The position numbers were made by a program, and so were the translations under genes. From contig MCFE01000010.1 in NCBI GenBank assembly GCA_002104905.1, forward strand, positions 186,001 through 250,000: a stretch of 64,000 bases of DNA, in the 5' to 3' direction. Positions within the stretch are counted from its first letter, which is position 1. Every line of letters starts with the position of its first letter. The stretch is from Basidiobolus meristosporus CBS 931.73 (Eukaryota > Fungi > Basidiobolomycota). Below are positions 22,660 through 56,131 of the stretch, one piece after another. Below the pieces are notes generated by a model. That model had not been told where the DNA came from and did no database searches. It was given only the letters and a program-made list of their open reading frames with translations.

Positions 22660-24177
22660 TCACACGAGTGTAGAGACTTGCAAACCCAACGAGCTGTGCC
22701 GGTATGGCGTACTGGTCGGTGAGGGGGCTTTCTCGCTGAATATCTCACTTTGAGTGGCCTTAGGACCGGTGTCTGGAATCCCCATAGCATGCCGTAGCCG
22801 GGTCTTCATCCGACGAAGCTTCTCACAAAATTTGTCGGCCGCTTGGTGCATGCTGCGGCGACGCTTGACATGGATCTCGGGTTTGGTGGGAGGGGAGATC
22901 GTGCTTGAGGCTATAGTGGTGGCCATGTCAGAGTCGGAGTGGTTGGATGATTTAGATTTGGAGGTTAAGAATGTCGAATCAGGCAAGTGATTCTGATCCA
23001 CTGTTGTTATGAGCTCCTGCGTCTCCTCTGGCAGCTTGGATGGTTCACATGGCTCATGTGTTATCGATTGTTTGAGATTGTTGACTGGCTTTTCAGTCAA
23101 CACACTGTGAGCAGAGGCAGGTGATCCAGAATTAACAGATGCGCTTCTTGAGAGTCTCGAGAGAATGGAGGTAGATGATATACTTCTGTGCTTTGGGCCA
23201 GCTAGAGTGTTTCCTCCATTCTTGCTGTTCAGAAGAAAGGAGGAGATGATGGAAACTCTTGCCTTGGAATGGCCAGGAGACTTTGTGCTCAATCTCAGGA
23301 TACTTGAGCGCAAGCTGGAGAGCAGCGGAGAGCGTGCAAGTGGCTTAGGCTCGATCATAGAGTTAAGGGTTGAGACCAATTTATACTCGATGGTCGGCAT
23401 GGACCCCAGGGTGTTACTCAAGTTTCGCAAAGACAAAGGCATCGCGTTCGTGGCAACTGAAAGAAAAGTTAGCGGTTGGAGGTCTGACCCATGCAAACAA
23501 AACATACCGAATTTTACTACGTTTTTAGGGACCCAGCCTCTGGGATCACCATCGACCACAAATACCATCCGACATTTACTGTCGTCTTCCGGTTCGGCAA
23601 ACACACACATCCCTAGGAAGCCAACATTCATACGAAGCACACCCTTGTTCATGGGACACAGGGTATGCTCCATGCTCTTTCCGACCATGACATATTTGCC
23701 GTCCTCCAGTTTCTTCATGGTGGAGAAAAGAAGAATGTCTCTAGCCGATATCGGCCAGATGGGCTTGGTCCTGACGTACTGGAAACGAGTGACTGGGTCT
23801 ACTACCTCGACGATTTCCGCCGCGTCGATTAAATCCTCCCACTGCTTCCACCTTTCCACATCCAACATGTACTCGAAGGCCAGTTCCGGTTTACAAGCAA
23901 GGCGGGCAATGATTTTGTACCCATAACTGACCTTGGGGTCCTGGAAGATGTGAATATAAGGCTCTTCAGTACGGTGTAACACCTTCGAGAATCGATCACT
24001 TTCTAGGGAGCTATCCAAGGAGTCGACAAACTGGGAGAGCATCCGCTCGCATTCTTTCGAATATTGGTGGTTGAAGGCTTGAAGCAGGGATGGAATTCAA
24101 TTAGCCTGGATTAGTACAAATATACTGCAGTTATAGCTCTACTAACTAGCTTCATTATCACTCTTCGGCTCCGACAT
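22660..24177 (-). CDS. START (StAR-related lipid transfer) domain protein with long Ser-rich C-terminal tail; probably 3 exons
   Basis: YMLDVERWKQWED, YVRTKPIWPISARDI, DGDPRGWVPKNVVK START motifs; predicted first exon MSEPKSDNEA (24177-24147) spliced in frame; in-frame 51-nt intron 23507-23457. Confidence 0.85.
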
Positions 24178-25640: not shown

Positions 25641-27975
25641 ATGATGGAGATTCCTAAACCGCTGACAGCCAAACTTACTAAAGGCACCAACACCACCTAC
25701 TCAACAACTCTACCACCCATTCTACTGGCCACACATCAGTCTATCCTCCCCATACCACCAGTACTTCCTTCCCCAAACACAATATCCATTGCACATCCGA
25801 AACTCCCCAACCCTGCAATTAATCCTGTTTCGGGGTCGCAGACCGTTTCGATCCCTCCCGGAAACAACCCCGATCCCCGTACACCTCCGGAGGAAGCCAG
25901 CGAAAACGTTACCCAGGGATACGATCCTTGCAAAAACCCCTCGGACACCGAGAGCTCCGATTTAGAAGGTGAGGCCATGCTGAAGAAACCTTCGGGTGTG
26001 AACCTTAGCATATCCAATACGGACGAACTCCGTAGACTAGCTCTAGAGTCCAGGGAGAGTTTGGAAGTCTTGGTGGCAAAGACGCACGAAACAACACCAG
26101 GGTCCGCGGATAAGGCGCGCTCAATACTGATCAGCACATGGTAATTATTTACGTAGTCAACACAGATATCGATGGCTCTCTACAACAATTCAACCGATGC
26201 TAGGTTGATTGACCATTACGAGTCGGTAGATGATCAAAGCGTCTCCAGAGAGGCACTGTATAATCAATATACTTTGTATTGTGATAAGATCGGCGTGCAT
26301 CATGTCAACTCGGCAAGTTTTGGAAAAATTGTACGCTCGGTATTCCCCAATATCACCACCAGGAGGCTCGGAACAAGGGGCCAGTCGAAATATCCTTTTG
26401 AAATTAGCGTGACTAATGTTCGGATTTCAATATATTACCCATAACTTTGGAATGCACGTATCATTACTGGGGCATTCGGGCTAAGCAAGCGTCAACAGCC
26501 CCCTTTGCTCATAATACCATGGCTCCTATTAGAAGGTTTGAGTTTTGCAGGCGCTCCCCCCATACACACGCTAACCTTTATCGCAAACAACAGAAAGAAC
26601 AGTCAAGAATCCTCCCGATCGGAATCAAGCTCCAACGGCGACAGCTGGCACCCTATAGATATCGACACACGAAGTGACAACGGCGGCTCTTCTGACCTGG
26701 TTTCTACAGCAATGGCGAACTTCACGACACTATATAGAACTCACTGTCAAGTTATATACGACCTGGCTGAACGGCAAAACTTTGCTGGAGTTAGTAATTT
26801 ACCGTTAGATCTTGGCTGGAATGTTGCAACTGATCGAATACTGCTTAGATTTCCACAGTGATTAAGCAATTTTGGCAAGAGCTGGGGCCTCCATATAGGG
26901 GGATCGCAAATCATCCGGAAGTCATCCACAACATTGGAAATGACGACACAATACTTTACGATGTTAGTGCAGTTGTTATTGTTCCGGGATGTACCTCCAC
27001 CATCTTGTCTGATTGCTACCTAGAACATTTCTAGGCTGCTATTTGCCACAGTTTTGACCCCTCTACCACTAACTACGCTCCAGGCTATCCAAGATTTCGC
27101 CAAGCAATACGACGAATGGGTCGTTGTTTCGCTGTATGGTCATTCCCAGCAGCTGTGCTCGAAGAAGCTTGAAGGTATGGCGATGCACTTCAGACATGGA
27201 CTCTGGATGCTACTGACCGTTCATTTGTAGTCGCTCGCACCTTCACCGGAATCCTTGCCAAACTTTGCTCGCTAAACCACCTAAGTCAGTCGGCAGCATC
27301 CATTGTCCAGAACAAGGATCAAACTACTCAAATGGTTGCCGACTGGGACAGCATTGATTTCGAATCGCTACGTGATCAAGCAGCAATAATATGTCAGTGT
27401 GGCAAAACCGATCTGGTTCAAATAAGTGAGTCGTCTATTAAGACATTTTCTACAGAGCCCTTAATTAACCCACTGCCATCAAGTGGAAATCGACATAAAG
27501 CAATTGCTGCAGTCATCTGCCCAGTTGGATCAATGGGTTGGCTGGGTTGAAACGATATGCAGTAAATTTGTCGGAGAGGTACCATGTCGATTCGTCACAG
27601 CGTAGACTGCTTAAGTGGACCTGCTGACGGCCATCTCTCATTTAGAATCTCACCGAAGAGGGAATCACTGGTGCGCAAGCATTTGCGCTGAAATGGTCTT
27701 ATTTTGGGTCGCTTGTCATCCGAGACCTCTCCATACGCAGCGCCCCAAGCTTTGGTTTGTGCTCTTCCTGTCGTTCGCGCATGAAAGTTACTGGATTAAC
27801 CGTCAATCTAGGTTCTTTTCAAATCCTAAGGCTGTTTATCGACGATTATGTTTATCATTTAGTACAGAAACAGATAGCGCAGGCAGCCAGTGTCAATACT
27901 ACATCACCCACTCAGCCTTCAATGTTACCACGCCCCGTGCCGCTATCATCCACTTTTCCCTCTAGAATACCCTGA
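25641..27975 (+). CDS. RFX1: RFX-family transcription factor (DNA-binding plus extended dimerisation domains), multi-exon; true start uncertain
   Basis: Spliced DBD WLIDHYE...LYNQYTLYC...[37 protein letters not shown]; C-terminal FALKWSYFGSLVIRDLSIRSAPSFGSFQILRLFIDDY matches the RFX dimerisation region. Confidence 0.92.
26390..26457 (+). other. U12-type (minor spliceosome) AT-AC intron in the RFX gene
   Basis: 5' end ATATCCTTTT, branch-like CCCATAAC at 26438-26445, 3' end GCAC; removal joins AA+G TAT CAT TAC = K-Y-H-Y and restores the conserved SKYHY of the RFX DBD. Confidence 0.9.
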
Positions 27976-28129: not shown

Positions 28130-29230
28130 TTATGGTTGGATCGAAGTTAATAAACTATGGTTCATAACTGAGTAAATCTTTGTGCATGTATCAATACACT
28201 GCTCTATCGCCTAAAAGTATTAAAGAACGCTGTTGAGTATTGGCGTTGGCGGCGGCTGGTGTGCTAAAAACACTTACCTGATTAGACATGGCCACCTCGG
28301 TCTCTCCTCCTAGAACTATGTGTGTGACTTCGTTAAGGGATGGCATGTAAGAGAGAACCAACGACCCTTGCTGTAGCTCCTCTTCGCTAGATGTACAATC
28401 AAGGATTACTTGAGATTGGAAGAAACCCTGTCGTCCCAGGAAAATTGCGGTTAGTACATGGGTATGTAGCTTCACATTTAACCAGCTTGCATTACCCCTG
28501 ATGAAGCGGCAACCAGGTCAAGCATCTCAATACCAGCATCAGCCAGAGCAACTGAAGCGCAGGTGATAGCCGCAGCAACAGTATTTCCAATACCGTCGCT
28601 CTCCAAAACACTGATGTAAATATCTACGACAGATTTAGGGAACAACTCCAGCCGAACTGAAGGAGTTAGGGCTTGGGTAATGATTTGGGATAGCTCTCTC
28701 TCTTGAGCATCCTGAAGAAAATGTATGAGCTGGGAAAGCTTAGGTTATCGGTGCTATATATATATATATACGTACTCTAAGATGACCACGACGCTTGGCA
28801 CAAGAGAACGGTGTGAATTTGAATTCGCAATTCAATTCCCCCTTGTTATTGAACGAAGGCTTCTTGGCTTGTCTGGGACCGTAGCTAGATTGAAAGAATC
28901 ACTATGTGAGCCATTTGCCTCGAGCAAAGGTAAATTTGGGAAATATTCCCTACATGGCACAAGCAATCTTGGTATGTTGCATCTCGATGTAAGCTGAACC
29001 GTTGGCCTGGCTGATCAATCCAGTTTTCAGAACTACAAATTAAACGGGATCAATCTCCTGCAACTGCTAGTATAAGCAAAAAGCATCATACATATCGGGC
29101 GGAGTTCTTCGGTTGATCTCCCGTCACTGCGTTTTTCCGCCAATGTCATAGGAATCACAGCTGGTGCCTTTTGATCTGTAAAGATTGGGGCCACGCTGAG
29201 TTCAGGGCCGTTGATGCGTTTTCTATCCAT
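28130..29230 (-). CDS. MTR3: Exosome RNase PH-like subunit Mtr3/EXOSC6, 6 exons
   Basis: N-terminal DRKRINGPE (as EXOSC6 DHRRIRGPE), LKTGLISQANGSAYIE, YGPRQ, FPKSVVDIYISVLESDG, ASVALADAGIEMLDL reconstructed across GT-AG introns. Confidence 0.88.
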
Positions 29231-29651: not shown

Positions 29652-31322
29652 ATGGAATATCACCCGGTCGCTCAGCAACAACTCATGTAAGTCCAGTTTT
29701 TAAACCAAAAAGGCGTTGAATTACTAACACCTTTGGGTTCTAGCTTATGTTGTTCTTGCGGTACCCCTATCCCGCCCAATCCGGCCAACATGTGCCTGAA
29801 CTGCATTCGTAATGAGGTTGACATTACTGAGGGAATCCCAAAACAAGCTACTATTCATTTCTGCCGTAATTGTGAAAGATATCATCAACCACCCAATCTC
29901 TGGGTTAGCTGTCAGCTCGAATCTAGAGAGCTTTTAGCGTTGTGCCTGAAAAAGCTTAAAGGGCTTAGCAAGGTTCGACTTGTTGATGCCGGGTTTATCT
30001 GGACTGAACCTCATTCCCGTAGAATCAAGGTCAAACTAACCATCCAGAAAGAGGTACGTTTTTCTAACAACCGAGGGTTCGTTGCGATCCAGAGCTTTGG
30101 CTTACATGATAATTCTTAAGGTCTTTGCTTCTACTATCCTGCAACAAATTTTTGAGGTCGAGTTTGTGGTTTCCACTCAGCAGTGTGAAGAGTGTACCAG
30201 GGTCGCCGCCCAAAATACCTGGAAGGCCACTGTACAAGTAAGACAGAAGGTAAGGCGCATCAAACTAACATTCCCGGTCATTATGTTTGCTCATTGCTGT
30301 TTGCTTGCCCGTAGGTCAACCATAAGCGTACTTTCATGTACTTGGAGCAGCTTATCCTTAAGCACAATGCCCACAAGGATACAATCAACATCAAGGAAGT
30401 TAGAGATGGGTTGGATTTCTTCTACGCCCAACGTAGTCATGCCGTCAAAATGGTGGAGTTCTTGAGTGCAGTCACCCCTGTTCGCTCGAAGACCTCCGAG
30501 CAGCTTATTTCCAGTGATATTCACAGTGGTACATCCAACTACAAATTCACCTACTCGGTGGAAATCGTACCAGTATGCAAGGATGACCTTGTCTGCCTAC
30601 CCGTCAAGCTTGCCAGATCTCTCGGAAACATCCAGCCTTTAGTTCTTTGCTCTCGTATTGGTAACTCTATCCATGTTATGGACCCGAATACTCTGGAATA
30701 TGCTGATATTTCGAACTCCGTTTTCTGGAGAAATCCGTTCGACTCCCTTGCCACAGTCAAGGATATGGTGGAATACTATGTTCTGGACGTTGAAGTACTA
30801 GGTACTGTCCGTGGAAAGCACGTCTTGGCTGATGTCATGGTTGCACGTAGCAGCGACTACGGCAAGAACGACACCACCTTCTTTGCTCGTTCTCACCTCG
30901 GTGGCATCTTGAATTTGGGAGACACCGTTATGGGCTATGATCTCACCAGTGCCAACTTCAACAATGCCGATTTCGATACCCTCAACAGAAACGCCCTCCC
31001 TGATGTTATCTTAGTCAAGAAGAGCTATCCTAACCGAAAGAAGAAGAACAAGCGCCAATGGAAGCTCAAGAATTTGAACAAGGAGGAAGAAGAGATGGCC
31101 CCCAGAAAGCAAGATCAAGAGAAACTCGAGCAAGACTTTGAGCTCTTCTTGCGTGATCTCGAAGAAGATCCCGAGCTTCGTTCCACCATCAATCTCTACA
31201 AGTCCGAGCAGAAGCCTGATCCTAATGCTATGGAGACCGACGTGGATATGTCTGATGACGAGGGTGCTCCTGAGATTCCTCTGGAAGAACTCCTTGAGGA
31301 TTTAGCTATTAACGATGAATAA
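29652..31322 (+). CDS. NMD3: 60S ribosomal export adaptor Nmd3, 4 exons
   Basis: CCSCGTPIPPNPANMCLNC, WTEPHSRRIKVKLTIQKEV, WKATVQVRQKV.HKRTFMYLEQLILKH; acidic C-terminus ending in the Leu-rich NES-like PLEELLEDLAI. Confidence 0.97.
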
Positions 31323-50227: not shown

Positions 50228-50696
50228 CTATCTGTGGACTGTATATATGGTAAAAAGGGTTGGGTGCTCGGCTATATGTAGATGTTCAACGCACCATGTG
50301 CAGCCATGGTTTGCTGGTTTTGCGGACAAATCCACGAGTATCCTTGCGAGGGCTGGATGCATGGCGTGCTTGATATAGAGGGCTGGCCAACAGTAGGATC
50401 GATTCGACTGTGGGATAGGATCTGCCAACCATCTCCTTGACGACAGTGAAATAGTGATAACGAATCTGGTTACGAACCTCCATGGGTAGTCCGACATTGC
50501 TAACTGTGAATCCTCTATTGCTGACCTCTATGGTAAGCTGGATACCATCTAATGTGCAGAAGGAGAAGATCGACCATGGGATAAATGGGTCCGTTGGATA
50601 GTTCATGCGGTGCACTTCCAAAGTATCCTCCAACATTTCTGAGCGTAGGTTACGAAGGAGATTGACGACATCTTCACGAGGCGCACTGACTTTCAT
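50228..50696 (-). CDS. GSKIP-like (DUF727) small protein; main ORF 50696-50286 with an apparent +1 frameshift near 50372
   Basis: FCTLDGIQLTIEVSNRGFTV and YPTVESILLLASPLY resemble GSKIP [20 protein letters not shown] and YHETVYSLLDTLSPAY (recalled from memory); TATATAA ~150 bp upstream of the ATG. Confidence 0.6.
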
Positions 50697-54719: not shown

Positions 54720-56131
54720 GGTTTCAAAGAGCTAAGGTGCTTTTCGTGAGTGATCAGATTGAATCAGAAGTCATTGTTATTTATACTGATGAAATCCTAT
54801 GGTGATGAGCAATATGAGATTTTGCCAATATAATGATTCTCATATCCTTCTGGTTAGACGGCAGCCTTTCAGTGGGGAACTTTAACATACCATTTTTGGA
54901 GGTTGGGCCAGCTCTGGATGCCTTAAGGAAAGGCATAAAGCCGCAAACGCGAATTGCAAGTATAATGCCTATAAGGTAGCGAATCAGGGAATTTGAAGTG
55001 TCATACCAATGTATTCAAAAGCGACCAGCCAGATGTGGTCCAGTGAGGTTATGTTCCAAACAAGCACTTAAATCCTGGGTGGTATTATGTCCAGTTGAAC
55101 TAAGCGTGGCGTATTCTTATCAATTGTTCCTGATGACACAAGAAATCTATAGGTGTACACGAATCCAAGGCCTATTATCAACATTATTGCCAACATTTAT
55201 AAGTATATGGAACCAACTTCCTCCAGACTCATTGCGCTTTCGGTAAAAGATCAATCTCGTAATTTAGCATGAATAAGCCACCCCAATGATGGTGTAACAT
55301 CTGGCATAAAAATCTCGCAATAACAAGATATCCTGTTACTCAGAGTCCAAAGTGAGTAAAATCTATAGGATAGGCACAATGCACTACATGACTGGTGCTA
55401 TAAACCGCTAGTCTTTAAATTCTGGTTGGCTAAATACCACCATATACTTGTATGTTGTCGATATTACTTGTATCGTATAACCAGGTAGTAGTCATGTAGA
55501 GTCATAACGGTGTTGCAGTCACTATTAAAAGAAACAGAAAATGGTGAAGCCGTGTGGCTGAGTAGCCCATAACCTTATATCAACACAGAGTAACACATGA
55601 CCCACCAATATTGTCTTCAATAGTAGACCAAGCACCATAATCTGGACGCTTGGGTGGGTGCCATCAATGTCACAATCCTAAAAACCGCTGGCTGATAATT
55701 ACCAAAAGCATTATGTAGAGTCTGAGCTAATGCCCATAGTTTGTCGAAAATCTGTATCCGAGCAAAATTTCAGGAAGTAGTGACGGGAGCTGCATGGGCC
55801 ACCCACTCAGTGATGTATTGAATGAATATGCTATTGGTAAAGTGATTAGCGGTTCCCGAATCAATCGACAGTATTTAATGTTGATGCGGCACATTTGAAC
55901 AATTTAACTCAGTTGATAATGCCAACAGGTAGATATGTACAAAAAAATGTAAAGTATCATTTTAAGAGTCTATTGTATGAGACTTTAATGAATAGTCGCA
56001 ATCCTTATCTGTATTCAAGTGCACTAAAATAAGTACATTGATGATCAACACTATTGTTACTTTGAACACCTGGCACAAACCCTTATTCAAGTCTCAATAT
56101 GTGTAGATCAATACTGCCAGATTAAACATAT

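Follow-up and report, generated by a model that had tools for sequence, protein, structure and literature searches.

A 68-nt stretch at positions 26390-26457 (+ strand) of the 64-kb window, the whole stretch of Basidiobolus meristosporus DNA analysed here, is very probably a genuine U12-type (minor-spliceosome) AT-AC intron within an intact RFX gene. An earlier note on this DNA had placed a 68-nt AT-AC intron with U12 signals in the wing of the RFX DNA-binding domain (DBD), and our coordinates and motifs agree with it exactly.

The RFX gene and its second intron

The gene spans 25641-27975 (+) and was modelled as ten exons with 595 codons and a TGA stop. Exon placement followed tblastn alignments of fungal RFX proteins, and frame and stop codons were then checked in each exon. 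Exon 1 (25641-26140) begins at the ATG of the ORF call P0269. Exon 2 (26204-26389, in frame from 26205) encodes most of the DBD, and exon 3 (26458-26535) supplies the first G, which completes a Lys codon, followed by the last wing strand, YHYWGIRAK. Exons 4 to 10 lie at 26594-26789, 26849-26990, 27052-27174, 27231-27425, 27484-27578, 27646-27754 and 27812-27975, all on the same strand. The nine introns measure 63, 68, 58, 59, 61, 56, 58, 67 and 57 nt in order. AT-AC ends were observed in intron 2 alone; the other eight (56-67 nt) are all GT-AG, several of them with CTAAC- or CTGAC-like motifs near the 3' end, and intron 1 (26141-26203, +, 63 nt) is an example of these ordinary U2-type introns.

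The spliced model was compared exon by exon, with each exon as its own query. Exon 2 alone matched Pfam RFX_DNA_binding (PF02257; E 6e-23, columns 10-68 of 79) and the RFX1 DBD chain 1dp7_P (E 1.4e-14, residues 5-65 of 76). From the latter alignment the intron falls at residue 66, and the homology limits of exon 2 therefore put the break at the Lys preceding the last wing strand. We take the region around residue 66 of 1DP7 to be the beta-hairpin wing that contacts DNA; this human RFX1 structure places the Basidiobolus intron in the fold only and carries no information on splicing. Exons 5-10 matched Pfam BCD_RFX (PF25340) at columns 24-69, 73-111, 113-175, 179-205, 217-245 and 247-269 of 270, in that order, in a per-exon scan where only two exons exceeded the curated cut-off alone. 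The stop-free exons together with the consecutive BCD_RFX segments thus describe an intact RFX gene with DNA-binding and dimerisation domains. Both features of the family were found, a winged-helix DBD and a downstream BCD (extended dimerisation) domain, and judged by these matches the architecture of DBD plus BCD is that of the RFX1-4/6 type.

By eye, the neighbouring ORF at 29733-31322 (+) resembles an NMD3-type ribosome export factor, with a zinc-finger N-terminus and a long C-terminal ORF, while that at 28191-29230 (-) resembles an RNase-PH-like exosome subunit with introns. The ORF at 22660-24042 (-) encodes a 460-aa protein in a single exon, perhaps with a lipid-binding START-like fold.

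Intron 2 (phase 2) carries minor-intron signals. Its first bases from 26390 are ATATCCTTTT, and the 5' splice site, ATATCCTTT at 26390-26398, fits the U12 consensus RTATCCTT completely, directly at the exon end and at a junction set independently by Pfam and PDB homology. Towards the other end, CCCATAAC at 26438-26445 leaves 12 nt to the end of the intron. The branch-site-like CCATAAC (26439-26445) agrees with CCTTAAC at 6 of 7 positions, and 13 nt separate its likely branch A (26444) from the 3' junction. The 12-nt tail after CCATAAC is TTTGGAATGCAC and has no pyrimidine tract. U12 branch sites are recognised by a motif like TCCTTAAC about 10-15 nt before the 3' junction without a pyrimidine tract, and this is the arrangement found here, apart from the one consensus mismatch. 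The intron starts with AT and closes with a terminal AC (26456-26457), and removing its 68 nt restores the frame: excision joins AA|G, the G at 26458 completing the Lys codon ahead of YHYWGIRAK.

We enumerated every frame-keeping GT-AG, GC-AG and AT-AC pair around the site. The pair 26390-26457 was the sole choice that restored the junction and kept the ten exons stop-free, which bears out the earlier claim that no GT-AG intron restores the frame at GQSK/YHY. The junctions are fixed apart from the splice signals, because the DBD homology breaks exactly at both. ATATCCTT occurs 4 times in the 128,000 strand positions of the two window strands (3e-5 per position), and only 1.3% of window AC dinucleotides have a branch-like motif (6/7 positions) 6-21 nt upstream; the joint chance of such signals at the homology-fixed junctions is ~4e-7. 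A chance origin of the signals is very unlikely. No Basidiobolus protein carrying the spliced junction was present among the protein-search matches. An Rfam scan for minor snRNAs gave zero matches to any family in the 64-kb window, a result that applies to the window only and says nothing on the genome.

Rival readings and the effect of retention

Two nearby GT-AG pairs, 26409-26485 and 26418-26485, preserve the reading frame, and a gene finder limited to GT-AG introns could pick either. If the main transcript used one of them, the protein would lack YHYWGIRAK and gain a few extra residues. We consider this highly improbable: both pairs remove the most conserved strand of the DNA-binding wing, which is encoded intact right after the AC, their donors (GTGACT and GTTCGG) are weak, no pyrimidine tract occurs in the GGGCTAAG ahead of their acceptor, and they leave a perfect ATATCCTTT at the homology break unexplained. 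There is a similarly slight probability that the gene is a decaying paralogue in which the 68 nt were inserted and always stay in the transcript, giving a truncated protein or none. Against such decay, none of the ten exons contains a stop, they follow the RFX DBD and BCD profiles in order, and the same feature was observed in paralogues of B. ranarum; a random insertion would have to contain ATATCCTT with a branch-like motif and a closing AC, each exactly where the frame is restored, again with a probability of ~4e-7.

Removal of the AT-AC intron by the major (U2-type) spliceosome was also considered, as rare U2-dependent AT-AC introns exist. These have major-type 5' sites such as ATAAGT together with a pyrimidine tract. 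The intron described here instead has ATATCCTTT, a branch motif 13 nt from its end and no pyrimidine tract, and it is unlike the eight U2 introns of the same gene, so that splicing by the major machinery is extremely unlikely.

For a U12-type intron, established knowledge of minor splicing suggests that U11 would pair with ATATCCTTT and U12 with CCATAAC 13 nt from the 3' end, after which U4atac/U6atac.U5 would catalyse removal of the intron. Joining AA|G would then restore the Lys codon, which lies at the tip of wing W1. With the intron left in place, the frame meets an in-frame TAA at 26442-26444 (+), a stop lying inside the branch motif and closing the ORF 26172-26444. By conceptual translation the retention product ends in GQSKYPFEISVTNVRISIYYP, 18 codons past the Lys, without the remainder of the wing or the BCD domain. 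Truncation inside the DNA-recognition wing had been foreseen in the earlier note and follows from this stop. The note's further suggestion, that U12 splicing acts as a rate-limiting switch for a DNA-damage/cell-cycle factor, is a hypothesis general to minor introns, and here it is speculation.

Other RTATCCTT matches with a branch-like motif were observed in the window, at 50338 (+), 54842 (+), 62405 (+), 30766 (-) and 30382 (-), and were taken as chance. The stretches 50338-50454 (+) and 54842-54948 (+) were rejected as U12 introns, being without coding context on the right strand; the match at 50338 (+) sits opposite a minus-strand ORF. At 30661-30766 (-) an RTATCCTT match has a branch-like motif at a U12-like distance, and this too is probably chance.

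Minor introns and RFX gene models in Basidiobolus

In B. meristosporus, Larue & Roy 2023 (NAR, PMC10639083) counted 249 minor introns (0.554%), the greatest density in any fungus, and Olthof et al. 2024 (PMC11347168) reported 237. The latter study found U11, U12 and U6atac genes in several zoopagomycote fungi including B. meristosporus, together with a putative divergent U4atac in this species. With minor introns and snRNA genes already published, a retained minor spliceosome in this organism is not new; the earlier note was right to propose it. The published B. meristosporus U12 introns share with the RFX intron AT-AC ends, ATATCCTT and a branch site close to the 3' end. RFX is not named in PMC10639083 or PMC11347168, and the sets of 249 and 237 introns, which depend on the public annotation, may or may not include the RFX intron.

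The nearest named relative of exon 2 was the B. ranarum protein KAK9720290.1 (P0003, K7432_004217), which is 87% identical in this region; the second B. ranarum paralogue is K7432_012843 (P0268). The model of the former (241 aa) ends with GQSK and then YLFCLKFLEM, and that of the latter (242 aa) with GQSK and then YPFFEKYSQVTISNAYSVNKT. Both public models read into the intron, and the end of the wing and the entire BCD domain are missing from them; they are truncated annotations and not short proteins. The expectation that standard gene finders would mis-annotate such an intron is thus borne out in two public models ending inside it. When the 241-aa B. ranarum fragment was used as a query, the only match from the window gene was the ORF call P0269, which corresponds to exon 1.

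The intron site in other RFX genes and its age

A DBD alignment of 6 sequences was used to scan metagenomes, yielding 80 RFX loci in which the junction was examined. In sixteen of the 80, a GT-type intron start lies two bases into the Lys/Arg codon before YHY, the same site and phase as in Basidiobolus, with 5' sites of GTAAGT, GTGAGT, GTTTGT, GTACG or GTGCGT. An AG acceptor and a YHYYG exon were found in 6 of the 16, with intron lengths of 47-1365 nt, and none of these 16 GT-type metagenomic loci starts with ATATCC. The remaining metagenomic loci are uninterrupted at the junction. Most of the 16 have named animal RFX4 or RFX4-like proteins (Ixodes, Varanus, Mytilus, Dinothrombium) as their best matches; loci L027, L066-L068, L070-L075, L079 and L080 resemble animal RFX4/6, and L001, L030, L063 and L078 are from unnamed eukaryotes. 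The introns of these 16 loci are identical to the Basidiobolus intron in position and phase but have major-spliceosome signals, with AG at the 3' end in those where the acceptor was found.

Where only ORF calls were available, a phase-2 U12 intron can be recognised by its read-through, since AA followed by [AG]TATCCTT translates to K-Y-P and then a T-initial codon, whereas GT[AG]AGT gives K and then a stop. In translation this K-Y-P signature was observed in the window gene (KYPF), in the second B. ranarum paralogue (P0268, KYPFF) and in an Olpidium-like contig (P0015, KYPFV). Back-translation of YPFF and YPFV after GQSK in P0268 and P0015 corresponds to [AG]TA[TC]CCN and then TT. The other B. 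ranarum model, P0003, has K-Y-L instead of K-Y-P, which could be ATATCT or a converted site. P0015 comes from a Logan contig, and among named species Olpidium bornovanus is the closest to it, at 87% identity across the DBD. The spliced form GQSKYHYCG is read in P0014, from a related contig free of the intron, and the named O. bornovanus models have GQSKYHY uninterrupted. Compared with P0014, a partial 711-aa protein from an O. bornovanus MAG (P0161) has two insertions, of ~35 and ~10 residues, at positions corresponding to introns of the window gene, and these look like introns retained in the annotation.

Vertebrate RFX7 and RFX5 are minor-intron genes, and in zebrafish retention of the rfx7b minor intron abolishes function (bioRxiv 10.64898/2026.08.20.745718); the place of that intron within the protein is not stated there. 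Querying with part of the RFX7 DBD gave 30 genomic reading frames, one of them an NCBI model of Cirrhinus mrigala, and all 30 continue past RRLG[MT]RGKSK with Y-P. In 23 of these the residue after Y-P is F, L, S or Y, and the other 7 end at Y-P. Sixteen other RFX fragments end exactly at S[KR], which fits a U2-type GT[AG]A read-through. From these translations the RFX7 minor intron appears to match the Basidiobolus intron in both codon and phase. RFX7, including zebrafish rfx7b, would thus resemble the window gene in having a minor intron in an RFX factor with K-Y-P (RTATCCT) after the same Lys codon. The two differ in architecture: the RFX5/7 group is without the dimerisation domain (bioRxiv 10.64898/2026.08.20.745718), whereas the window gene has a BCD domain. 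The comparison with animal RFX genes that the earlier note had suggested thus points to a site and phase common to the RFX4/6-like loci and, by translation, to RFX7.

The spliced RFX7 form KYCYSG was observed in P0342 (Logan, 106 aa), an RFX7-like sequence with many substitutions that reads KYCYSGLRKK without a mid-DBD intron and looks like a processed (retro-copied) RFX7 pseudogene of a vertebrate. The RFX7 frames P0343 and P0344 have RRLGTRGKSK, as in the chimpanzee fragment P0071, and could be primate. The top matches of the DBD search (P0001, P0002, P0004-P0007 and P0009, of 867-1089 aa) contain 4-5 tandem RFX DNA-binding domains, with P0010 and P0012 grouped with them. A named tandem case, with 4 domains, is XP_076056714.1 of the mantis shrimp Oratosquilla oratoria, and two-domain forms were seen in the tardigrade Ramazzottius and the amoeba Balamuthia. 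We know of no description of multi-DBD RFX proteins.

The intron is probably very old, because it appears to share its codon with the vertebrate RFX7 minor intron. Read-through translations suggest a U12-like intron of the same site and phase in the second B. ranarum paralogue, the Olpidium-like fungus and vertebrate RFX7. An early RFX gene may accordingly have carried a U12 intron in the wing that stayed U12-type for more than 1 billion years in a few lineages, turned U2-type in others, including RFX4/6-like genes, and was lost in most fungi. To turn a U2 intron into a U12 intron, the 5' site and the branch site must change in a coordinated way, and this is considered far rarer than the opposite change, from U12 to U2. 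Given this asymmetry, together with the U12-like state in fungal BCD-type RFX and RFX7 and the U2-type state in RFX4/6-like genes, an ancestral U12 intron would be the simplest history. We hold with moderate confidence that the Basidiobolus and RFX7 introns are the same intron, U12-type before the split of fungi and animals and the diversification of the RFX family.

The shared site with RFX7 could also be convergent, arising by a separate gain or by the change of a U2 intron to U12 type in Basidiobolus. In the reconstruction of Larue & Roy (PMC10639083) minor introns were sparse in ancestral Zoopagomycota, and most loci with an intron at the site are GT-AG. Against this, three separate lineages share the U12-like signature at one codon and in one phase, and convergence would require the rarer direction of conversion wherever a U2 intron was the starting point; we regard it as unlikely. 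Some caution on a shared U12 origin comes from the K-Y-L of B. ranarum P0003 and from the uninterrupted O. bornovanus models.

What is new here is the truncation of the B. ranarum models, the 16 GT-type loci at the site and the K-Y-P frames of RFX7; otherwise the intron is an ordinary member of its kind. The picture of which fungi keep a minor spliceosome is unchanged, and the minor introns of this fungus, the richest in them so far known, gain one well-supported case. The two public B. ranarum RFX proteins, cut at the intron, call for corrected gene models, and the K-Y-P read-through after a phase-2 junction provides a simple protein-level signature for unannotated U12 introns in ORF-called data. 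At this one site, U12 and U2 states can be mapped across a single gene family as a way to study how U12 introns become U2-type. The site also connects a fungal intron with the minor intron in RFX7 of vertebrates; retention of the latter is important in models of minor-spliceosome disease. If the two introns do share ancestry, control of RFX factors by minor splicing, as in zebrafish rfx7b, could be ancestral.
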